A stretch of 62,987 nucleotides of DNA, the filler included, from Hyphochytrium catenoides (taxonomy: Eukaryota; Protista; Hyphochytriomycota), in NCBI GenBank assembly GCA_900088475.1. It is 8 parts of 8 records of this genome, joined end to end, with 100 filler letters (N's around TTAATTAATTAA, not from the genome) between each part and the next. Parts side by side here need not be neighbours in the genome. Positions count along the whole stretch, not along the records: positions 43,385 to 59,326 come from FLMG01002216.1; 7 more parts are not named here. One strand, written 5' to 3'. Below the pieces are notes generated by a model. It had not been told where the DNA came from, searched no databases, and was given only the letters and a program-made list of their open reading frames with translations. Shown piece by piece: positions 43,385 through 59,326 of this stretch. Position 1 is the first letter of the stretch; each line of letters begins with the position of its first letter. Both the position numbers and the translations under genes were made by a program.

Positions 43385-43839
43385 GATGTCTGTCCCTATC
43401 TCGCCTTCATCGATCGTCTCCCCGATTGTCTCCCTTCCTTATCATTGCCCTCAACGGGGTGGAGGTTATGTAGCTCTTTTCCTCTTCTTTCTAGGACGCT
43501 ATTCCCTTCTTCTCTACTACCTTTCTGCCTAACTCTTAGACGTTCTCAACCTCTGGCTGCTTGTCCTTCCATGTCCACTGTCTTCTCTTGTTGTCCTTTG
43601 TCCGCGACAGGGGATGAGTCAGTGCCACGCCCGTAAGGACGAGGGAGACAAGTCTCTCTTCTCTTCTAGTGCCTGAGAAGGCAACTTTTTCTTTAAAAGA
43701 CGAGAACTGGAGGCCTGGGAAAGGGGAGAGGAACGACACATCATGGCTTAGCTCTGTCCTTCCTCTGTCCTAAGACTTCCAACCTTCAGCTTCAGCGCCG
43801 ACGGAGAGCGGGAGCTGTGCCTCCCGCGTGCTCTGGGTC

Positions 43840-46231
43840 ATGACAGGCACTAGCTCCAATGTCGTGGGATTAGTCTTGGTGAGACTCTAGTAGAGACTCC
43901 ACAGTCGTCTTGGGTACTCCTGCTTCTGTTTCCTCCTCTTTCCCCAGAGATGATGGCGCCCCGCGGTGCGCTTGATCTTCTCATTTGACTTAGGATGATC
44001 TTCTCTATTTCTGTCGGCTTCCGATGCCTATGTAACACCCTCCGTCTAACCTCACTCCCCCGGCGCTTAACCTCTCTCCTCCGGCGCTTAACCTCTCTCC
44101 TGTCCTGTCCCCATCCCTCTCAGGCCATAGTTGGGGCCATAGCCTCCAACTTCGGCGTGAATGTGCAGAAAAAGTCTCATAGCTCGAACGCTGAGCGGCC
44201 AGCGGACGAGCAACGAGTCTATTGGCGCCGTTGGTCCTGGTGGGGTGGCTTCTCCCTTGTCGTTGTGGGCGCTGTGGGCGACTTCCTGGCGCTCGGGTTT
44301 GCAAGCCAGAGTCTCGTGGCTGCCGTTGGGGGTAAGCTACATATCTAACAACTCACAATAGGTCACCTCTGCTCTGTGCCATCCTCTGCTGATGTGACCA
44401 TCAAAGGCTACAAGGGCTCTGCGCTACGTGTTCGCCCTCTTCCCTACCGCTTACCGCTATGATATACTTTCCGTTCGGCCGGTGTTAAGGGCTTAGCCCC
44501 CTCTATCAGCGCGAGCTCATCCTCTCCAGACGAATGATCTGTCGCGAGCTTTATTGCCTCTGCTCCTCCAGCAGCCGTTTTCCGCAACGGCGTCTTGACT
44601 CCAGGGCTTTCGTGGCTTCTTCCATATTTGATGTCAATCGCTCTGTTCCTTTCTTACATCTCGCTTCCTCGCCTGGGCGGACCTCCGGGAGCTTCGACCT
44701 CCCCAGCCGTTTGCCTCGTTGTCTCACCAGCGCCTTCGTCTTTAGGTGGCACTACTCTACTGGCGAATGTCCTGATCGGTCACTTTTTCAACAAGGAGAA
44801 GCTCCTTCGGAGCGACATCCTCGGCATTGCGGCCATCACCGCGTGCGTCATTATCACCGCAGCTATCGCTCCTCCTTCCAAGGACTATGACCTCTTCACC
44901 CTAAAGAGGCTGTTCCGACATCCTGCCTTTATCATCTACGTTGTCCTGCAGGGAGTGGTGCTACTCATCCTACTGATGATTGTGACAGGATGGACCGTGT
45001 ATGACTTCTTTCTCTCGCTCTGCAGTAAGTACGCTCTCCACTCCTGGCAATGATGGCCGAGTAGGTTTTTAGCGTCAAGGGAAGCGTGAGGCGACGAAAA
45101 GGAAGAAGCACCTTCGAACACATGGGCTAACCCCTTCATCCAACCTCCCACTCCTGCTTCGTTCAGGAAAGCTTGGGATTATCGCCAAGTCTAATGCTAA
45201 ACCAAGGGCAGCAGGAAAGAACAGCCACTCGCAAGATAAACCTAAGGACTCAGAGCTCTCAGAGGCGGGACTTAGCAAGCGAAAGGTTGACCACCTGCCC
45301 CCAAGCGGCAACCTTCGTCTGCCGACCGGACGCGAAAGAGCGAGCGAAAGACTGATGATGACAGATCCCGACACAGACGGGATACCATACTATTACGCTA
45401 TGTTCTCTGGCATGTTTGGTGCCATGTCCGTACAGCTAGGCGGCTGCACTGCTAAGGTCTTTCTCACGACGCTGTCCGGAGTGAATCAATTCATTTACTT
45501 TGAGACGTACCTCTTCCTTCTGGGCATGATCTTCACTATGGCAGTGCAGACACACTTCCTGAACAAAGCGCTAGAGCTAGGAGATGTGATGAGCGTCTTC
45601 CCCGTGTTCCAGGTAAGAAATTCTTCAAGAAGAGCCTTTCAAGCGCTCTCATGGAAGAGATTTGAAAGGATCTGCCTCATTCTATCTCAGTATAGACTCC
45701 TGCCTGACTATCCTGGCCATCCTATGATTCATTGTCCTCAGCATGTAATCCTCTTTCTTGACCTTTGCCCTATCTTGTGACTCTTTGGGTCTGCCCTCTC
45801 CTTTGTCTGGAGGGTTGCAACCGATCAGTCTTACGGGGACCCTATTCCGCCTCTTTCACTGTCTTCAAGATATTCTGGATTGGATTCTCTGTCGTCGGCG
45901 GCATCGTGTTCTATGAGGAACTGGAAAGCTTCACTGTCGTTCAGTGGGTGCTTTATCCCATTGCACTACTGCTAGGAGGACTGGGTAAGAGCTTCAATAG
46001 CACATATAGAACTGAGGAGACAAAGAAAAGAGTGATAAAAGAGAGAAGAGACACAGAGAGTGCCTGTCACAAGACGTTTGCGTCTAAGACTTGGGACTGA
46101 CTCTGTGTCTTCGACTAGGAATATATCTTCTCACTGCGCATGGCAATATACGAACCCCGGTCGTGCCACCCTCAGGAGACGATGAGCATATAGACGCAGA
46201 AGAGTCAGGACAGGACTATAAGCTGATGTAA
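43840..46231 (+). CDS. NIPA-type (DMT superfamily) Mg2+ transporter-like membrane protein, ~6 exons
   Basis: MTGTSSNVVGLVL|AIVGAIASNFGVNVQKK...WWGGF...GDFLALGFASQSLVAAVG|GGTTLLANV...QTHFLNKALE...VFPVFQ|IFWIGFSVVGGIVFYEE...GIYLL...DYKLM*. Confidence 0.88.
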
Positions 46232-46341
46232 CAAAGAGAAATAGCCTCTCCAGGCTCTATCATGTTACGTCAAAAGTCATGTCTTCTTCATTTGGGAAAG
46301 GACCTACGAGTTTCTACATCGCTGCCCTTCATCCTAGTTCT

Positions 46342-49300
46342 CTATATCTCTAGTTCGTCCACCTGAGTGAAGTAGGATGAAGACGCGTCACTAGGTCTCA
46401 CAAGGTCTATCTCTTCCTCGTCTGAGCCTGAGGACACCCGAGGAATAATCTCGTCAAAATCCACAACAGCGATGTCTTGGACCTTTTCTATGGCTTCTCC
46501 ACACGCTATCATGGCCTGCCCACCATAGAAGGCAACGTCTGGGTCTGGGTCTTTCGTTAGGTGATGCAGCGCTTCTTCTAACTCCTTAAGCTGCTCAGAT
46601 GAGCCGGTTGAAAGGAAGCAGGACAATAATGGTGAGGAGCAACGAAGAGATTGGTTGCGGAGGGCGGATGGATAGTCGATTTCGAGCAGTCTTGCGGACA
46701 GACCACCAATGTGAACGTATTGCCTGGAATTAGAACAAAGGAGAGAAAGAGCTCGAGCACGCAGCAGGTAGTATTGGAAGGCAGGAAGCAAGAGAGAGGC
46801 TTCAGAAGAAAGAAGACGTAACAGGCACCTCACCTCTGCATAACCGCCTAAGAAAGGACCCAGGACGGTAAGCTCTCTTGCAAGGACAAGGCGGACATTC
46901 ACGACCGCATCCTACAGCACCAGTGTTCAGATATACATGCTATGAACACAGGAGCTTGCTAACAGTGACTCTGTGGTGACTGCATTCCTACTCATTGCCC
47001 ATCGGTCTGTCCTACTTGGCCGACTCTTCCCTAGTCAATGAGCCTTGCAAGTCTCTTACCCGGCTTAGTGGCAAAATGTGCGCCCTTACAAAGTCCTTGA
47101 GTCCCGCAGCTGCCGAATACTTCGCAAGGGTTTCCTACAAGGGAGCATTTATAAGAGGAAGAACCGTAACTTTTAACGCAGTGGCTGCCAAATATGTACC
47201 TTAGTCTGTACTATGCCAAGAATGCGAAGCTTGTGATTCCTGTCCTTCAGCAAACTCTCTACGTGTGGAAGCACAAAAGGCGACCACTCCGCAAAGTCAG
47301 AGCCTTCCATGAGCCTAAGGCAGAGAAAGAAACAATATAATTTTAGTATGTCGGCAAGCTGAGGTAAGGTCCATAACTGCATGGAGAACAAAGCGGAGAA
47401 AGAAGGGGTGCCAGCGGACAACGGCCGACGCATGCATCTAAACAGAAGATATGCATTTAGGTCCGATATAAAGACGAAGCAGATAGATTTCAAACATCAC
47501 TCTTACACTTTGAAAATGGAGAACACGCCTTGCCGCACTTCGTGGACAGAGTCGTGCAGCAGCGAGTGAATGATGGGCCTAACGTGCAGCTCAAATGCAG
47601 ACGTCCCTAGCCACTTTAGCAACGGAGGAATGGCCTATATCCATAGAAGCGTGAGTCAGAAGCTGCCACAATTACCATCCTCCATCCCATGGTGAAGGCG
47701 CCTTCACTGCCTTCACAATTACCTCTACTAATGCCAATCTTGCCCTCCAATCTTCCTGGGCCCCAAGCTTCATCAGCGCGGGAAGAACTACCTCTGTAAA
47801 GGCATCCTTCTGGATCTCCTACAGTGAAAGACTGCGGTAAGCATGGTCTTGAGAGAGGCGGAGACAGGAGGGCTTCCTGACATGTCACTAACAGCTTAAG
47901 AAGAGATGACTAACGAGTGAATCAGGAACTGAGACAGCACGTTATTTCGGAGAGGCAATTGAAACGGAGACAAGTGAAGAGGGACTGAGGGCTTAAGGTT
48001 CGTTCTCTCGTACAAATCCAATAAGATCCAAATCGTCCGCAACCCGAATGGCGACTTTGGCGTTACTGTTCTCCAACATTTGTACCACGACCGGGACCAA
48101 GTGCTTGATGGAATCCTCCTTGCCTAAGAAAGCCGCCAAACTGCAGATTGTGGCCGCCAGAGACTAAGGAGAGCCGAGCACGACGAGATTATATGAGCGC
48201 GGGGTGAGATTGAAAATTAGGTAACACACAGGGAAGGGTAACTCGAAAGGAGTAAGCGTTCGCACAGAAAGTGTGGACTTTGAGTGGTTGGTACAGGCCC
48301 AGAAGCAGTGCCTTTACCAGCTGAGGTTGTTCCCTTTTGTCATCCAGTGCACCCTCAGCGACTGTAGGAAGTACAAGCTGACAAAAGTACTGAGAACCAA
48401 AAATTTGTGCCACAGAGATGACTATTCGCGCCGCTGCCGCTCGGGTCTCTGCGATGGAGTCCTAGACAAAGAGGGAGGCAGCAGATCGGAGAAGCCAGAT
48501 AAAAAAGGAGCCAAGAACGATCAAGTAAGCGTCTTTCCTAACTCCCATGTCAAGTGCACCACCGTGATCCGTACAATGACGATTACTCTCACCGCCGTAT
48601 CGTGGTGCGAGAGCTAACTCCCTTCTACCTCTGGTTCCTGCTAACTGCCATCATGGGTAAAGAGCCTCCTTACCTCTTTAAGTTGCCTGCAGTATAATGC
48701 ACATAATCTTTCTATCAATTCTTGGGCTTCGTAGGCCTTCTCCACGTCTGTTAGATCAAAATTCGCGTCGAAGTAGTCTGGAGATCCTGGTCCACCGTCA
48801 GACCCGCCGTTGCTTACGCTTGCTGACCTTTCCTTTGCGTCTGCCTCCTGGACTAGTGCCTGTGATGGGCGATACATAGGTACGCATAAGACATGCAGCA
48901 TGTCAGATATTCCCGACGGAATATTGTCAAGAGTAAAAGGGGAGTGCCGGTCAAGAGTTTAGCGAAGAATGACTAGAATGGACAGTGATGAAAGCGTAGA
49001 AAGCTGAGACGAAGTTGATAGTATCGACAGAGCGCTAGATGAACGATTTAATAGAAGACCCGGTAATGGAGAAGGCAGGTGAACCCCAGGTTTGAGGAGT
49101 GAGAAGGGTCCACACCTGTACATTTATCTCGTGGCAGAATCGCGTGAAATTATCGCATACAGCCCGTCGTACTTGCCAGTTTCTACCACAGAGTGGAAGC
49201 AGTGCGGTCCAAAAGAGCAAAGTGAGACTCGCTTGGAATGTCCCCATCAGGCAACTTCCCTCCTTACCTATCATCGGAGAATGCAACTAAAAGATCTATA

Positions 49301-52300
49301 AGCTTACGCCGTCTCAGTCTAAACATGGCCTCCTCATCATGCTTAGCCCTACAACGCCAAAGGAGGGGACCGAAGAGTTTTTCCACATGTTATAGTCAGT
49401 AGCGGAACCCAAAGGGATGACGGAGGCCTTGTTATCTTCTTACTTGAGACTCTGTTGGGAGGTCACCTTGCGGCCGTTTCGATCCAACACAGGCATGGCC
49501 TCTGAGTCACTTGCTCCACATCTATTCATTTTTGCAAGTTCAACTGCATAGCAGCGGATGAGTCAATCTACAATCAAGAAACCCAGGGAACGCCAACAGC
49601 ACTGGCACGAGGACTTTCAGATAAAGAAGGAAGCACTCACTGCGCAGGTAACGAGGGCAATGTCTAATCAACGGAATGTGGCCTCGGGTGATAAAAGGTG
49701 TCGGGTTGGTGCATAGCAAGGACAAAACCGTACCTAGGTACTCCACTGCCTCTCTTCGAGAGACATCCCTCTCAATAAATACAAGTTCCTCCAGGAGAGG
49801 AAGAAGCCAGTGCCATGCTGACTCATCGCAAGCGACGGATACCATCTGCCCTAAAGAACCCAGGGCTTCATCCAGCACCAATCGATCGTCATCTAGACAA
49901 GTCTAATACAGGGAGGCGAAAGCGGACGACGGGAAGAGGTAAGGCCTAGATCTTAGTCCCTACAAGCATAAGGAACACTCACCCTGGCAAAGATCCCTCC
50001 TAGGAAAGGAACGATTATATGCAAGCGACTACTGGCACCATTAATGAACTTAAAGTCTGTGCTGTACGTCTAAACAGGGACGAGTGGAGAAATGGAATGG
50101 TAAGTAAAGGCCCGACTACTTTGCTACATCGTCAAGAAGGTAGTAAAACCACGCCCTTCGTTAAGCCCTCATGGTTCATCCCCGTTGCTTCACCCCACAG
50201 TCTTGTTTATGGGGCTAGATGTGTATCACCTGCGGCATGGCCTGCTGCCAGCAATACAGGTCATGATCATCGAAGTCATCTTCAGTGAAACTGTACACTT
50301 TCGGCACCAGCGCACAGATCAGCATGGGCGTGAGAGAGCGGCTTGTCTCATAGCTGTGGTTAGATTATCAGGGAAAGTTTAAGAAAAATGAGAGAGAAAA
50401 GAGTAGGGCCGCAAGAAGAATGGTGGTGAGTAAGAAACAATGTCAGCGGTAGGACGTTAGATAATGCAATGTGCATGCCTGCTACTGCTCATTCTCTTCA
50501 GCATGGGGATGAAGTGGGTCCCGATTTGATATACTGAGAGAAACTCAATGATTCCGCAGAGAGTATCTCCAGCCTTCTTATACACGTCCTTCTCTCTGAC
50601 TGTGGAAAGAATCTCTATCACCTGGAACAGCACATGCGAAATGGAAAGCTTGCAGATCTCCATCGCATTAGCGTCTGACGAGGGCATGGAGACTGGTTAG
50701 CACACATTTAGGTCAACATGCCTCCTCCCTTCTGTCGGAGCCCTTCGCTGGCCTTCTTACCTATAGCAGCCAAGAGCCGAACCATATCTGAGCTACCAGG
50801 TGGTTGTGATATTAGGAATGGCAACAATACCGGCCGCAGGGCCCCGGTGCACTGCCAAAGAGTGAATGCAGTTTGATCAGAGTAAGCCAAGTGATGAAGG
50901 AGTGCGGAGACCGCCACCTTCCTAGCTATCGACTAGGACCAACTTTGATGAAGAGACAGACAAAAAAAGACTGGGCAAGGACACGGGACGAAGAGTGCCA
51001 TCGTATGGTGCTGCCTACCTGTAGTGCGGATTGGTCTGTCGGCCAGGCCAAATTGGCAGGGCACATAGTGAGTTGGTGCAGCCCCAAGAGCCAATACCGA
51101 ATGTTCATAGCTGCAGTCACAGTTCTAAAGCTCGATGTGTTGTTCAAAACCTGAAGCCCGGGAGGTAGGTTTGAGCATTAGTACGGGTGAAAGGATAAAT
51201 AATAAACATCATGAACGAACACAAGGATCCTTGACTGATCTCGCCCAGCATACCTTGTTTGACTTTCGCAATCGAGCCACCTCGCTCTTGCCTAGCCTAA
51301 GCATGTGCATCTTCGTTGGAAGAGGCGCCTCCTACAGGAACAGATAATGAGAAAGATTCAGTATGTTCATAGGTCCACGTAAAAAAACACATCTGAAGCT
51401 CTCAATAGGCCTGAGTGTCGCCCTTTCTCCTTACCTTGATACGGGTGAGTATCTCTATATGGTTAAACGGAGCCAGATTCACCCCATTGAGGGTAAGGAT
51501 CAAGCTATAAATGCAAGAATGAACCATTTAGTAGGCGCGATCAGGGTTGTATGACAGCAGGAGTGTGACATATGAGTGAAGTGATAGCAGTTGGCCAAAA
51601 ATAGAAGAAGAATGTTTTGTGACTATCCCGTCAGAAGAAAGATATGCTTGCCTTGGTACAGTAACTCCTGCAGCGCTTGCCGCAGAATGATCTTCAGTTG
51701 CCACGATGACGACAAAATCGAACATTCTCTCTACGGTCTGCAAAGCAATGTTAGGCCGTGTCTTTCACAAGCAGAGCTCTGTGGGTAAGGTTTGGGACAA
51801 AGGGTGACATGTGAAATATAACGCCAGATCAGCGCCACTTGAGGCAGCTGCGGCCATGGACAGCACAAGAAGAACGGTGTTGCCGGTATCCGGGAAGAGG
51901 GAGTCCATTCTCCTTCGCATCATAATAGAGAGCAAAAGAAGTACATCATCAAGAACGGACAGCAGCTCCTGACGTACCAGGCCCATGACCTTCTGATTCA
52001 TTGTGACGTGGTAAATGTCGCTCTTGTGTGGAGTGGCAAAGACAAAGCGGATGAACTCATTCTGATGTGACGCCTTGCGAACTATCCAATAGTACTGCTC
52101 CAAGGACTTGATCTTCACATCGTTGATCTGGGGGCAGCAGCACATTTGAGGTATCATTCAGATCTTTGGATAAAATGGGGCAAGCGAGTACTAAGGAGCT
52201 ACCCTCCACGCCCCACAAAGAGAGGAGGAACCGGGTAGATTAGATAAGTAGCTTGTAAGGGTGACCCTCTATTATGGGAGAAATTATGGCAGACTGCAAT

Positions 52301-54149
52301 GAATGCCTTACCTCCTTCAGTACAAGACCTGGTATAACTCCATATCGATATGGTGTGGAATCCGATTCCACTGCAGCCACTGTCACAGAGCTCCGCTGCT
52401 GATAGAGAGAGAGCGCGCGCGTCTCCGTAGCCTTCATCAGCACCAGTCGCCGCCCAGCCTTGCGACCTCCCTCATGTCCAGCCCTTTGAGGTATCCAAGG
52501 CGTGTAAGGGTCCAACCACTAAGGTGCTCATGTCAAACAGTCAAGAGTGCGAGGGTAACTTACCATGGCGCAGGATCAAGTATGATAATCCCCTTATCTG
52601 ATAACACAAGGCCAATAATGGCATGACGATGTCTAGCAGTAGATGAGAATAAGTTCCACTGTGAGTTTTTGATCAGGGATAAGGTCAAAAGGAAGATCAA
52701 TGGAGCGCGATTGGCTGATGTGGAGGTATTGAAGACCCTGAAAGTGTTTAGAAATCACCCAGGACCTCCACAGACGAACATTGAAGAGGTATACAAGCTC
52801 AAGCCAATACAGATCGATAAGAAGCACACAATCTTCTCCAAAAATGGCATATGGTGATCATTCCCACGATCATTCACGTGACATGCTCTATTGCTGCGAC
52901 CACCATCCGGCTCACCTGCTCTGGACTTCTCTCTCCCATTTGGCGAGGCCCGTCGCATCGGTATCCTTAAAATTGTCCACAGGGACGTGGCAGCAGCCCG
53001 TCTGCAGCACCCCAGTCAGTTTCACATCATGCGATTCCGCACACACAACGATACATCACAGAAACCGACAACGAGGGATACACACGGGAACCCTACAGAT
53101 ACTATCGAGCAGTAAAGGCTGTAGCGCTATGGAAGTAAAGTGAAGGTGAACCAAAGCAGGCAGCTTTCAAATACCTTCCCATAGTAGGAAATGACGATGG
53201 AATCTCCTTCACTCTCTGTCCGCAAAAGGAACGTCCCCACAGGCATGGTGCTGAGCAGGGATTCTATGTCAAGAGAGAGAGGTAAATGACCAGAGTCAAA
53301 CAAGGACTTTTTACAGGCAAACATGCGTAAATGGAGCCATACCTGCCGCTATCCTACTCATGCTTCCCACATAAAACTTGTAGATCGATGTTCGCTTCAG
53401 ACAGTCCAGCTATACAGACACATTCAGTCAGAACCCCCAGGGTTGAAATGACTTCGAAGGCGGAAGACGCAGCCAAAGACTCGGTCCATCAACTAGGGAA
53501 CAAACAGACCTTGGTCAGGGGCACTGGTGCAGCCTCTTGAATATTGAGGGGGTTGCTTGGCTTGCCAACTGAGCCCGAGTGGTTCCGGCCGTCGAGACGT
53601 CTTGGCTCGGAGGTCGCGCTGTGGGAGGACGGCACATGCTCATTGTCTCCACGGAGTGAACCACTGCGCTGACCCTTGGTGCCCAGCTTGCGGAATGTGT
53701 TGGCAAGCTTGCTAGCGATGTTGCCCTTTGCTTTGGACCTGTCAGACTGTCCTCGGAGAACAGAGAGAGAGAGAGCATGAGGGAGGGATATGATCGGGGT
53801 TACTAACCAGCATGGCTGGGGACTTCGACGCACCTCATCAATGCGCTCTTCTAGCCGTCTGCCTCGACTATGGGCTCTTGCTCTTTTCTCCTCATCGTCT
53901 TCGTCCGCTCTATCGTCCTCCCCACCCAGTCGAGCTGGGGGGCCTGTCTTAGACCTAAACTCTTGCAAGTAGGCACTCATTTGTTCTGGCGTGCCATTCA
54001 CTAATCAAGCTCTAGATCCGTTACATTAAGGTACAGTCTTTCGGCCCACCGTCCTCTGTGGCTCAAATGCCTGGCTGGCTGTCCCGCGGACGAGGAGAAG
54101 GGGGATAGCCAAGCGTTTATAAAGCTCTGTCCTTACTTGACAGCTTCAT
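46342..54149 (-). CDS. Multidomain SH2 - PDZ - PDZ - PP2A A-subunit(PR65)-like HEAT-repeat protein (start codon tentative)
   Basis: More than 20 exons splice in frame. SH2: FYVGSMSRIAAESLLSTMPVGTFLLR...CCHVPV. PDZ1: VAAVESDSTPYRYGVIPGLVLKEINDVKI. PDZ2: MGLTVER..VVIVA..SAASAAGV..LILTLNGV...NHIEILTRIK. PR65-like HEATs: THFIPMLKRM, LLPLLEEL, NWQVRRAV, ETRAAAA, EDWRARLALVE, DAVVNVRLVLA, LTKDPDPDVAFY. Confidence 0.8.
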
Positions 54150-55504
54150 TGTGAAAGCAACGGATCAGTTCCGCATTGCTCTGGCACCTTTGCTCGTCGC
54201 ACCCCAACGTCATACACACATTGGAACCGCTTGCACTTGTCAGATGGAGCAAGAAGTAGCAGCGGATCCTTTGCTCGTCCTACAGTCCTTCCAAGAAGCC
54301 TACCAATCTGAGCTTTGATCAAGCTCTTCTTTTCTCTCTCCAAGCCCGGACGCAGAGGCGAAGTAGCAGTGCGTCAACGCTGAGTCCCGTCAGTACTCTC
54401 AAGAGCTCGATCTATAGGCCTCCGCCCGCAAGCACATAGTCCTCCCGCAGCGTCAATCTGCCAATCTCTGCAGACATCAGGCTCATCTCTCATCGCTCAT
54501 CGCGGTTGAGAATGAGAAGAGACAGAGCAGGGAGACTGAAGTTGGGACGCGCTCCGCTGACACACAGCGAGTGAGGGTAACAGGGGAGGAAGAGCAGAAA
54601 GAGAGACCTGGAGAGAGAGCCAGAGCAAGTGCCAGAGATGACGAGAGTCAGGAGAGATACCCCAAGAGAGGTGGAGGATGGTGTAATAAGGGGTTGGGGG
54701 GCGAGACAGAGCTATGAAAGTCAGAGACAGAGCAGCGGAGAGATAGCAGGTAGCTGGGGTGTAGAGAGAGAGAGAAGGCTGAGAGAGACAGAGGGAGGAG
54801 ATGGTAGCGCCCTTCGTCAGCTTCTGGTGCAGTATCAGCCTTCAGGTAACCCAGTCCTTAACCGCCCTGCTACAAATCAGGCTGAGTTTCAATTCTATCC
54901 TCCTCCCATTCTTCCTAATCGTACGCCGGCTGGGTTGTCTAATGGGCTGATGGAGAGCCTCTTTCTTGCGCTTTCTTCCTCCTTCCCCTTCCTCCCTCCG
55001 CTCACTCTCTTTCGCTGGATTGTCTCAGCTCTCCCATCTCCGTTTCCTTGCCTATATCTCATCGCGCTCTGTCTCCTATTAGTTAGTTATTTAGACCTCT
55101 CAAAGAGATTGTTCTCATGGCTCTGTCTTCTACCTCCCATTCTGACTGTTTCCTTGCTATCAGTAAAAAAGGGCAGAATACTTGACAAAAGAAAAGCAAG
55201 AAAGCCGTTTTGGCTCTGTTCGGGTGCACACTGCAACACCCAGAACACGACGGACCACTATCCCATAGAGGATCAGGAATAGGAGGGAGAAAGTGATAGT
55301 ATGTCAGGAATCCAACAGCCATTTTGGCACTATCCCAGATGAAGCCCTAGCTAGCCCTTAGCGTTCCTGGTAGTTGATCAATCCTAGCAGCTATCCTAGC
55401 ACAGAGGGCTTCTGATAAAAACAGCGTCATCTTAGATAGTCGTATTTCTTATGTACAAACATCCAGCGGTCGCTACGGGACCAATACTCCAATAACCTCT
55501 AACT

Positions 55505-58500
55505 ATAATATAGACCGTATATGCCCAAAGAACCTAATATAGTCGTAACCGTTGAGGAATTGATGATGGTTTGGTGAGGTTGCTGCTGAGACATTATCTA
55601 TCCTCTGCTCTGAATCTGCATCCATCTCTGTGTCGATTCTCCTAACAATCACAATGGACTGAGCTCTTGAAGCTCGACGATTGGATGACTTGGAGGCCTT
55701 GACTCTTTGGTCGGATACATGGGAGACTCTAAGTGATGGCCATGGAGGCGACGGTGAGAGAAAGAGAGAGAGAAGCTCAGCGTTGAAGAACTCATCCTGC
55801 TGGATGAGAAGAAGGAAGAGGTGGCGGAGAAAGGGATTGTGTATGAGTATAACTGTTAGACGGTAATCTCTGTTGATGAGGAGCCTTGGGTCAGGGGAGC
55901 CAGTGCGGCTACCAGGTCCAGCATGAAGGCATGTTTCTCTTTAAATGGTCTGAGAGATTCCAGTTCCTCTAGGGGCAGAGCTTGTCGATAGTGGTCATCC
56001 TGATGTTGGCCTAATTGACTTTGCTCTCGCACGACTGCATGGACAATGTTGGCAGCTGCTGGCTCAGGATCCGTTTCGACAATTTCCGGTTCTTCTTCCG
56101 CCTCCTGAATCGCCAAGACTTCAGCGAACGTATCCACACTGATCTCAATGCTCTGTCCGCGCTAGATCCTACCTGCTTTCTGTTGCTCCATAATGTCTGT
56201 TTCTCTCCTAGGCTTTTCTTTCTCTTCTCCCNNNNNNNNACATGTCTGGAATGCAAGAAAGGAAAGAGAGTGTGCAGAGAAAGAGAGAGAGAGAAACAGC
56301 CACACGTACTAGCTCTAGCCGACGGTACGCCGCGATCTGTTCATCAACCACCTCTTTGAAGGACGTAAGCTCTATTATCGGCAATAACCACCTGTCGCGA
56401 CCAAAAAGGACAGTTAAAAGCGGAACAGAGATTGGCACTCTTCTCAGCCTTTCGTGCAAACTTACCTAGCAATGGTAGAGAGAGCTGAAGGGATCTGCTT
56501 CTCAATCTGTGAAAGTCTCATCCGGCTAAAGACCAGAACTGCCCTATTATCTGTCCTTTCATTGTCTAGGCTAGTAGGACAAGGTAGACCGCAGTGTGCA
56601 TAAGCAGATGTGACCCAGTTATTTACGTCTCGTTGCTCTAAAAGGCGCGTCTCCTGAAAGACAAAGGGAGATAGGGTTGGTCGAAAGATATAGAGGAAAG
56701 AGAAGGCAACCTACTGCAAGAGAGAGGGGAGCGCGGACCGATAATAGAATGTCCTCTGACTATCAAAATATCTGAAGAATGCTGTTTTACCTTTACCAAA
56801 GCGGCAAGCGTAACTTCCCTGTACTCTTGATGCTCATCTAAGTATTTGACACTACTTCCCCGTTCCTGAGATGGACGACGGGATATTTTGCGCTTTGGCT
56901 GGCTCTGGCTGGTTCGATAGTGCTAGAGAAGGCAGGACACATCCAGAGAAAGGTTTATGGGACAACACAAATGGAGACCCTTCCCCAACCCAGCAACCAA
57001 CCACCAACCACCAAGTGGCATTTACCTCTTCTGATAAGATATTAGCGAGCTTGTTCAATATCTCTTCCACTGCCACTTGGACGCGCATACAGGACAGGCT
57101 GAGGGGATCTTCCTCCTCAGGAGCGAATGGGAGAGTCGACCTAAAATAAGCGGCTGCCCCTTGCGCCGCTAAGAGAGCCAGGCTTGTTAGAGGCTGTACC
57201 CTGGATCGAACAAGATGCTCGGAGAAGCATTAGGTAGGACAGCGAAACAGTATACAGCCCTTCCCTTCACCCAATAAAAAATACTAAGTGAGACAGAACG
57301 CGTCTCCCGGCTTGGCAGAGTGGGTTTACCTTCACTTGACCCTATGCTCTTTCTGTTCCGTGCCGATCGTGAGCCTTCTGGAGCCTCCTCTTCCCGCTTG
57401 CGGGGCAGGAAATAGCCTAATCTCCTCATCCTCCAGTCCAACAAAACGCGGACCTTTTCCGCAGGTGACTTTTTGGAGGCCGAGAAAGAGGGGTGAAGCA
57501 TCTTTGAAAGCAAAGCCCGAGCGACGATGTCGTTGTCTGTCTTATTCTTGGCCCCATGATCAAGAATCTGAAAGCAAAGTTTGTCAATTGGGGCTAGCAA
57601 AAGATCAAGCAAAGCATCTTTTACCTCGACTGCAAAGTCCAAAAGATAATCCACAACGGCTCTGTTGATAGGAGGTAGGTTATCCAGTAGAAATATGATT
57701 TTCCCCTCATAATCACTGAACGACAGCTTGCCTCCTATGAAGCTCTTCTCTGTAGCTAGAAGGAGCTGCAACCAAGGAGAAAGTGCGTCTTATGGGCTTT
57801 TTGTAAGATAGGAGATATTTTTGCTGCCAGAAGCAAAATAAAACTGGCGTCGTGGCGACAAGACGCCGACAAGAAAAGAAAGCCCGGACATCTGCTACCT
57901 TGAGCGGGACTCATGAATAATCAATGGACGAGGAAAGCGTGCCTCACCTCAGGATCTAACCCTGGCCCAGGGGGTATGAGCGGCCGCGGCAAGTCTTTTA
58001 GCCACTTGACAAGGAGAGAGATGAAGTAGTTCGGATCCGAGAGGGAGGGATCTCGGAAATCCAGGGTATTGAGATCCTGAAGACGGGCCCCATCCAGATA
58101 AAACGAGGCAGAATGTAAACTTAGGTTTGCGTGGGAAAGCTTATACAGCCAACTCATCGGGGCTAGAACTGGCATGATTACCTGCAGGATATTGCTTTCT
58201 AATCTGAGCGTTTGAAGTAAACCTGGGAATGTGATTCCGCCTAACATTTATGGCGTCCAGACCAGGATAAATTAGGATGGCGGGGTAGTGCATGTTAGGT
58301 CAGGAAGTTCCTTTCGAGTGTTTCTGGGATCACCTACCCGTGTCTCGGATGAGCTGGCAGAGAAGTAAAAGGATGGTAGGTACGGGTCGGTCCTCGCTGA
58401 GCTCAAGATCCTCCAGGGGCTTTCCAAACGTCGTTACTAGTCCTGCAACATTGAGTTAGAGTAGGGCTTCTCATGTGTCTATGGTTGAAGCTTGCCCTCT

Positions 58501-59306
58501 TCCGAGGTTGCTGTCTGCCTTCCACCTCAGTATTTATAAACCCATCCCGTCCAAGGACTTCCATCTTACCCTAGGTCTAATTCTTTGATTATCCCCTTCC
58601 CATTGTATTTACTTTCAGGTTCTAGGCCCCATAAGTATCCTTACCTTGAAGCTCCAAAAGTTCTGGGCAGGGCCTCATTGTGACGCTAAAGGTCAAAAAG
58701 CCCCTACTAGCTGATAAGGTACTAGTCAGTTAGGTTGAGTGGTCTGGGCATATCGATAGCCTTTGACGGCGGCATATGGGCCAAGTTATGACTACGCCGT
58801 TAAGGAGCATGCCACACGGGAGTATCGCAATAGCAAAGGCAGAAAAGGTCACCTGTTTTATAGCTTGACACTTGACTTTGAGAGATTATTGTGCCACTCG
58901 CGACTTTTCCTAGTTCAGAGGCGAGAGAGACATCAAGGCTCATAAGAGCCTGTTTCCAAGAGTAGTTCGTCCCAAAAGTTCCACTATTGTGAGAGGTCTA
59001 ACAAAAAAGACAAATCGATCAGTAAACCAATACTGCATAATGAAAGAGAGGTTCTTCGTCTCATTACCACCTCAGGCTTCTGTGGCTGGGTGGTGGTCTT
59101 CATATTGTTTACAAGGCTCGTCACTGTTGCTGCATAAGGAAATAGGTGAGAGAGGGACAAACCACGACGGCAGCAGCCATTGAAATGTGATACGTACCGC
59201 CCTTCGACCCGTCTTCCTTGCCTTCGTCCGCCTCCGGATTCTGGGGTCCCAATGAGGACTTCGATGGGGACGATACCTGTTCAGGTCGACGAGTATCCCC
59301 ATCCAT
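55505..59306 (-). CDS. RhoGAP-like protein with Gln at the arginine-finger position; 5' exons and 3' end uncertain
   Basis: Exons ~58442-57455 give TFGKPLEDL..VPTILLLLCQLIRDTGGITFPGLLQT...SLLVKWLKDLPRPLIP...LDNLPPINRAVVDYLLDF..ILDHGAKNK, followed by helical/coiled-coil-like exons. Confidence 0.72.
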
Positions 59307-59326
59307 TTAGAGGAATGGGTAGAGGA

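Follow-up and report, generated by a model that had tools for sequence, protein, structure and literature searches.

The specificity of protein phosphatase 2A (PP2A) is thought to come almost wholly from exchangeable B subunits, which dock on HEAT repeats 2 to 8 of a scaffold subunit (A or PR65) that hardly varies among eukaryotes. PP4R1, a PR65-like HEAT scaffold for another PPP catalytic subunit, is an earlier example of a PR65 relative with switched partners; long inserts interrupt its HEAT array, its N-terminal half is diverged, and its C-terminal motif resembles that of PR65. In PR65, the catalytic (C) subunit binds HEAT 11 to 15, and B56 and small t bind intra-repeat loops of HEAT 3 to 7 by way of Glu100, Trp140, Phe141, Asp177, Pro179 and Met180 (PMC1945078). 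The substitution E64G compromises regulatory-subunit binding, and R418W and K416E compromise binding of the C subunit, the former abolishing and the latter weakening it (PMC5017145). Here, we analyzed a PR65-like gene in a window of 62,987 nucleotides (nt), which is the whole joined stretch of Hyphochytrium catenoides DNA (GCA_900088475.1) along which all positions are counted; positions 43,385-59,326 come from FLMG01002216.1. The gene lies on the minus strand, and its product probably belongs, as a strongly diverged member, to the PP2A scaffold (A/PR65) family. The predicted protein is read here, with moderate confidence, as a diverged and collinear array of HEAT 1 to 15, with no rearrangement.

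The PR65 peptides quoted in a first-pass annotation of this DNA were mapped to the minus strand. No long open reading frames were present in the piece, and the peptides were located in short open segments amid stop-rich stretches. The locus is an intron-rich eukaryotic gene of approximately 49% G+C. A gene model was built from homology and splice sites, from which every junction was deduced. The HEAT part of the model consisted of 18 exons (51110-46342, minus strand) encoding 797 amino acids (aa), whose residues are numbered m1 to m797, and its introns were GT-AG throughout except for one GC-AG intron. The first exon of the HEAT part had an acceptor site and no start codon, and the minus-strand exon chain was extended upstream, with all phases fitting, to an ATG at 53324. 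An ATG at 51108 was rejected as the start codon because its frame fails to join exon 2. An MHML motif at approximately 51305 was rejected as well, since it follows a strong acceptor site and is part of a PDZ-like strand. The proposed complete gene contains 25 introns of 65-256 nt (23 GT-AG and 2 GC-AG), all of whose junctions are phase-compatible, and its frame of 1124 codons is uninterrupted, with a lone stop at its end. The two GC-AG introns, at 50478 and 51651 (minus strand), have the donors GCATGC and GCAAGC, respectively; GC donors were taken at both introns since no other donor preserves both the frame and the spacing that homology predicts.

Codon log-odds were trained on the best-supported exons, and the intron background was −0.35 ± 0.24 per codon. 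Every exon exceeded the intron mean, and the proposed frame was the best of the three by codon score in 9 of the 10 upstream exons. The least certain exon in the model is 49543-49444 (0.18 per codon), which was chosen because it is the sole exon linking four strong splice sites in phase. If the model were an artefact, the HEAT 1-4 exons and the downstream exons would come from separate transcripts, from alternative sets of exons or from a gene fragment in decay, and the single long protein would not exist as modelled. The way in which the junctions were obtained, the lower codon log-odds of the N-terminal HEAT exons (−0.08 to +0.09) than of the C-terminal exons (0.2 to 0.5), the two GC donors and the lack of homology support for exon 49543-49444 agree with such an artefact. 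Nevertheless, it appears improbable: the canonical and GC-AG junctions are compatible in 25 of 25 cases and give one unbroken frame, no exon falls to the intron mean in codon score, and a separate downstream gene would have no in-frame start.

At the sequence level, the predicted protein groups with PR65 and not with generic HEAT proteins. It scored 232 bits on a family hidden Markov model (HMM) built from 101 PR65 sequences, compared with 38-100 bits for generic HEAT proteins and at least 424 bits for every true member retrieved, a score that makes it an extreme outlier, and its best pairwise score was 148.6 bits. The significant matches in PDB searches were all PR65 chains; exon 47999-48163, for instance, matched PR65 339-386 with an E value of 1e-15. 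Pfam searches with single exons gave no match to PPP2R1A-like_HEAT (PF22646), a domain that spans three exons here. In a search of a library of 1.84 billion sequences, nothing with more than 36% identity to the HEAT 9-10 exon was found. No close ortholog and no relative of the same architecture came from the search of representatives with the HEAT 9-10 exon or from the metagenome scan with an 87-aa exon; the single pattern match in the metagenome scan was discarded as spurious and contains a stop codon. PP4R1 was not recognised among the 37 representative matches, which are nameless, or among the 120 homologs listed.

In order to assign the repeats, per-repeat HMMs (H1 to H15) were built from the 101 PR65 proteins, and a six-frame scan with these HMMs was independent of the gene model. 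The HEAT boundaries used (8-46, 47-84, ... 556-589), which we take to be those given for human PPP2R1A in UniProt, yielded slices in register. The family HMM aligned its positions 81-233 with m97-286 as one domain, positions 237-274 with m355-392 and positions 263-578 with m427-745. The same collinear order was obtained with MAFFT --add, and all 15 repeat slots could be filled in order. The repeats H3, H4, H7, H9, H10, H11, H14 and H15 scored best on their own profiles (H11, 30.7 bits; H14, 20.2 bits; H15, 23.1 bits on single-repeat profiles), the H6 slot scored as H3, and H1, H2, H12 and H13 were too diverged for assignment by profile. In the HEAT 1-2 slot, 6 of 16 (H1) and 8 of 18 (H2) near-invariant columns were kept, the single-repeat HMM scores were approximately 0-2 bits, and hhalign placed m50-140 on PR65 37-128 with a score of 35.5. 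The HEAT 5 slot showed mixed features, with hhalign scores of 21.8 for H5 and 18.7 for H2 and single-profile scores of 3.1 bits for H5 and 5.7 bits for H2. Insert 1 matched no repeat profile, and its best hhalign alignment, with H1, was not significant (P 0.39); insert 2 gave no match to the repeat profiles or with hhalign. The acidic tail had no counterpart in the family alignment.

According to the first-pass annotation, HEATs ~1-3 were duplicated, HEATs ~4-7 were apparently missing, and a short linker led to a HEAT-8-like segment at DRNWQVRR. Two HEAT-3-like matches were indeed found on the minus strand, in exon 50463-50696 (PR65 82-135) and exon 49660-49902 (PR65 61-116), each with an E value of 1e-4 against PDB. 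However, HEAT 4 (THFIPMLKRM..YETSRS, 19.3 bits), HEAT 5 and HEAT 7 were present, and the slot of HEAT 6 was filled. The segment containing DRNWQVRR scored best on H7 among the single profiles (10.8 bits) and falls in family-HMM positions 237-274, and the gap before it is approximately 62 residues. The C-terminal run was collinear through HEAT 15, as had been stated, with HEAT 8-15 forming one HMM domain of 170 bits. Repeat-by-repeat profile alignment and self-comparison, which had been suggested as a check, gave 15 collinear slots and no significant similarity between the supposed copies.

The sites of the docking surfaces, which are 90-100% conserved in the 101 PR65 proteins, were read under the collinear alignment. 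The replacements were E64 to M and E100 to R in HEAT 2-3; W140 to Y and F141 to E in HEAT 4; P179 to R, M180 to L, R182 to L and R183 to D in HEAT 5; S256 to N and R258 to Q in HEAT 7; and K416 to D in HEAT 11. The sites kept were D177, V181, W257, W417, R418 and R420, so that only D177 and W257 are retained in the B/small t footprint (E64, E100, W140, F141, D177, P179, M180, R183 and W257). In the predicted protein, the replaced residues lie in or near the B56/small t footprint or are mutation-sensitive for regulatory-subunit binding. Since invariant ridge residues are replaced while W417, R418 and R420 are kept, the canonical B ridge appears to have been lost and the C site to be partly kept at its core. 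The earlier idea that the B-docking surface was rebuilt and C docking was kept is supported in part, by the B-side replacements and by W417, R418 and R420; the Asp at K416 speaks against it. It is proposed that HEAT 11-15 would still dock a PP2A-type catalytic subunit, that the N-terminal ridge would no longer bind canonical B subunits, and that targeting would come in cis from the SH2-like and PDZ-like modules at the N terminus.

Several observations weigh against a collinear, C-subunit-binding PR65 relative. The HEAT 6 slot (m247-287) scored 16.8 bits on H3 and −1.0 bits on H6, a difference of 18 bits in favor of H3 (hhalign, 28.1 and 15.8). The block m205-287, which comprises the slots of HEAT 5 and HEAT 6, scored 27.4 bits on H2-3 and 16.8 bits on H5-6 (hhalign, 43.2 and 32.6), and a maximum-likelihood tree of two-repeat blocks nested it inside the H2-3 clade with support of 98/92. 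Two of the inserts each have approximately the length of one repeat, which would be expected of repeats left over from a duplication. Of the near-invariant columns, 38 of 69 are kept in H11-15 and 37 of 82 in H1-7, which is only a modest difference, and the binding of the catalytic subunit is predicted from a few conserved residues, with Asp at K416. In addition, the junctions of the gene model are predictions from homology and splice sites, and the searches gave no ortholog.

The tree and the scores of m205-287 are what would be expected if a block of HEATs 1-3 had been duplicated in tandem and HEATs 4-7 deleted, with the N-terminal half rebuilt as the first-pass annotation proposed; the alignment of insert 1 with HEAT 1, although not significant, points the same way. 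This event is highly improbable, however, because HEAT 4 and HEAT 7 are clearly present, no copy of HEAT 1 or HEAT 4 was detectable, and the supposed copies are dissimilar. Their local alignment score was no higher than that of shuffled sequences (30 versus 27.1 ± 4.7; z = 0.6; 120 of 500 shuffles as high), their intron positions differ, and no DNA-level repeat was found between them. True H5-6 blocks scored 15.2 ± 5.2 bits, and up to 26.0 bits, on the H2-3 profile. In an approximately unbiased (AU) test, grouping the block with H5-6 cost 11.9 log-likelihood units and was not rejected (p = 0.256). Moreover, when the two repeats were modelled jointly with chimeric profiles, the block scored 34.7 bits on H5+H3, 27.7 bits on H2+H3, 16.7 bits on H5+H6 and 12.0 bits on H2+H6. 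Since H5+H3 was superior to the other combinations, the first repeat of the block is assigned to HEAT 5, and only one repeat is contested. Duplication of a block together with deletion is thus not supported, and in the predicted protein the second HEAT-3-like match occupies the HEAT 6 slot.

The contested repeat could be a HEAT 3 copy that took the place of HEAT 6 only, by replacement or gene conversion, giving an array of 1-2-3-4-5-3'-7...15. In the six-frame scan, the H3 profile matched at 50636-50535 with 10.2 bits and at 49812-49726 with 12.9 bits, the H6 profile matched nowhere, and exon 49660-49902 scored 13.0 bits against HEAT 2-3 of PR65 and 9.6 bits against HEAT 5-6 (175-236). The excess of H3 over H6 in the slot itself, the chimeric profiles, which with HEAT 7 included gave 45.1 bits for H5+H3+H7 versus 28.7 bits for H5+H6+H7, and the retention of 8 of 12 near-invariant H3 columns (6 of 12 at the true H3 position) compared with 3 of 7 H6 columns are all in favor of such a replacement. 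On the other hand, H3 scores of this height occur in ordinary H6 repeats: in the 101 PR65 proteins, true H6 scored 7.2 ± 5.1 bits on the H3 profile, with a maximum of 17.9 bits and a score of at least 12 bits in 20 of 101, and the vertebrate H6 scored 15.5 bits. The value of 16.8 bits is therefore within the normal range of H6, and the excess of H3 reflects mainly the cost of missing H6 loop residues. Between the segment and HEAT 3 of the same gene, similarity was only marginal (z = 2.0; 24 of 500 shuffles reached the score), the two have no DNA similarity and no intron positions in common, and the AU test was not significant. Taken together, replacement of HEAT 6 alone is considered unlikely, although it is the strongest rival of the collinear reading. 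The HEAT 6 slot is unusual in having lost the H6-specific signal and not in its likeness to H3; in the MAFFT alignment, it agrees with the H6 consensus at 15 of 39 positions. Likeness between non-equivalent repeats was also seen in canonical PR65, in which H11 averages 23 bits on the H7 profile.

Under the collinear reading, the second HEAT-3-like segment would be the orthologous HEAT 6 in an array of 1 to 15 with three lineage-specific inserts. The slot would have kept the skeleton common to HEAT 3 and HEAT 6 (hydrophobic-hydrophobic-Pro..L..L....[ED]..VR..AVE) and lost the HEAT-6-specific loop residues, as would have happened in the other ridge loops of HEAT 2-7. As a caution, PR65 repeats that are three apart (2 and 5, 3 and 6) can mimic duplication in a diverged sequence.

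The domain order of the proposed gene is an SH2-like domain, a PDZ-like region, the PR65-like HEAT array and the acidic tail. Exon 1, which begins at the ATG, lies 2 kb in front of the HEAT array, is phase-compatible with it and contains an FLLR motif. Its Pfam SH2 score of 14.5 bits (E 0.038) fell short of the cut-off (21), with half a domain per exon, its best PDB match was an SH2-type alignment (E 0.27), and the ten best named ESM-Atlas clusters were all SH2 (top 0.89; 170 shared features). These results suggest that exon 1 is SH2-like. The PDZ-like region corresponds to residues ~140-320, directly before HEAT 1. Exon 5 (51978-52127) matched PDZ clusters in the Atlas (top 0.90), and its ten best family-assigned matches were all of the PDZ clan; the other exons of the region had no match in Pfam, PDB or the Atlas, and none of its exons matched in Pfam or PDB. 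The protein may thus carry SH2 and PDZ-like modules at its front. As regards the earlier suggestion that SH2 and PDZ domains replace B subunits, the upstream SH2-like exon agrees with it, and the PDZ-like exons are supported more weakly. SH2 and PDZ were absent from the Pfam lists of the 120 listed PR65 homologs and from the long matches checked, and no relevant account of an SH2/PDZ-PR65 fusion emerged from a search of the literature.

It is conceivable, though doubtful, that one polypeptide combines an SH2 domain, one or two PDZ domains and a PR65-type scaffold without a B ridge, and acts as a self-targeting PP2A-type scaffold. If so, the scaffold would bring a Ser/Thr phosphatase catalytic subunit straight to phosphotyrosine-marked or PDZ-ligand sites, the modules in cis would perform the role of B subunits, and the reading of phosphotyrosine would be linked directly to serine/threonine dephosphorylation. 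A scaffold relative with its catalytic-subunit end kept, its invariant B-docking residues lost and targeting modules of its own would be a natural experiment in phosphatase rewiring.

Table 1. Features of the proposed PR65-like gene. Positions are those of the window; the gene is listed in the direction of transcription.
Feature	Position	Strand	Basis or remarks
Proposed complete gene	46342..53324	-	26 exons, 1124 aa, ATG 53324 to stop 46342-46344
Exon 1, SH2-like N-terminal half (..VGTFLLRTESEGDSIVISY..)	53175..53324	-	Pfam SH2 (sub-threshold), Atlas
Exons 4-8, two PDZ-like domains (..GVIPGLVLKEINDVKIKSLEQYYWIVRKA..EFIRFVFAT.. / ..LILTLNGVNLAPFNHIEILTRIKEAP..MHMLRLGK)	51254..52483	-	Read by eye
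HEAT 1-2 slot, very divergent (..ALRPVLLPFL..SSDMVRLLAAI..)	50649..51124	-	Collinear MAFFT alignment
HEAT 3 (first match of the first-pass annotation)	50526..50648	-	H3 profile 13.1 bits
HEAT 4, with a GC-AG intron within	50290..50525	-	H4 profile 19.3 bits; H3-4 block 41 bits
Insert 1, ~37 aa, acidic then polar, HEAT 4/5	50019..50289	-	Insertion in family HMM
HEAT 5 slot (..IVPFLGGIFARTCLDDDRLVLDEALGSLG..), mixed H5 and H2 features	49828..50018	-	hhalign, chimeric profiles
HEAT 6 slot, HEAT-3-like repeat (..WLLPLLEELVFIERDVSRREAVEYL..; second match of the first-pass annotation)	49705..49827	-	Profiles, alignment
Insert 2, ~62 aa (..ITRGHIPLIRHC..RYLRIELAKMNRCG..)	49327..49704	-	Includes exon 49543-49444
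HEAT 7 (..KLIDLLVAFSDDRNWQVRRAVCDNF..)	48857..49326	-	Family HMM positions 237-274, 11.5 bits
Insert 3, ~35 aa, Gly/Ser/acidic-rich, HEAT 7/8	48746..48856	-	Family HMM; counterpart in P0001
HEAT 8-15, collinear, insertion-free	46486..48745	-	One HMM domain 170.5 bits, positions 263-578
C-terminal acidic tail, ~47 aa, past the canonical PR65 end	46345..46485	-	Translation of last exon

A gene for a NIPA-type magnesium transporter (44538-46097, plus strand) is located on the opposite strand and converges on the 3' end of the PR65-like gene. Two of its exons matched Pfam Mg_trans_NIPA with 30-35 bits, and the sole database relative of one NIPA exon was a metagenomic fragment with 58% identity. 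The G+C content was higher (54-56% versus 48-49%) at 53400-55400, just upstream of the proposed start, and at 43385-45000, where the AT skew was strongly negative. There is an assembly gap of 8 N at approximately 56240. A RhoGAP domain read by eye at 57190-58455 (minus strand; ..LLVKWLKDLPRPLIPPG..) was dropped; Pfam gave none at E up to 5.

P0001, a PR65-family protein of 517 aa that is encoded on a metagenome contig from TARA Oceans, was one of the relatives with the highest scores (139.6 bits). It has an insert of similar length in the same place, between HEAT 7 and HEAT 8, with a GSDG-type stretch, and the presence of this insert in both proteins may reflect shared lineage or a permissive loop. 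P0001 differs from the protein described here in that it is an ordinary PP2A-A family member on the family HMM (531.7 bits) with canonical HEAT 4-5, including WYTSR and DDT; the identity between the two is approximately 30%, and P0001 is without N-terminal extra domains, though its contig is short. With regard to PP4R1, the HEAT 11 motif of the present protein (WRARLALVE..P.L...LG) reads nearer to that of PR65 than to that of PP4R1. Like PR65 (PPP2R1A and PPP2R1B; PP2AA/RCN1 in plants), the predicted protein contains an all-HEAT array, is collinear through HEAT 8-15, and retains both the W-R-x-R motif in HEAT 11 and the D.D.DV end motif in HEAT 15, a repeat in which 7 of 7 near-invariant columns are kept. 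Unlike PR65, it has three inserts, a 47-aa acidic tail and approximately 325 extra N-terminal residues with an SH2-like domain and PDZ-like sequence, and the residues that are invariant on the B-side ridge of PR65 are replaced in it.

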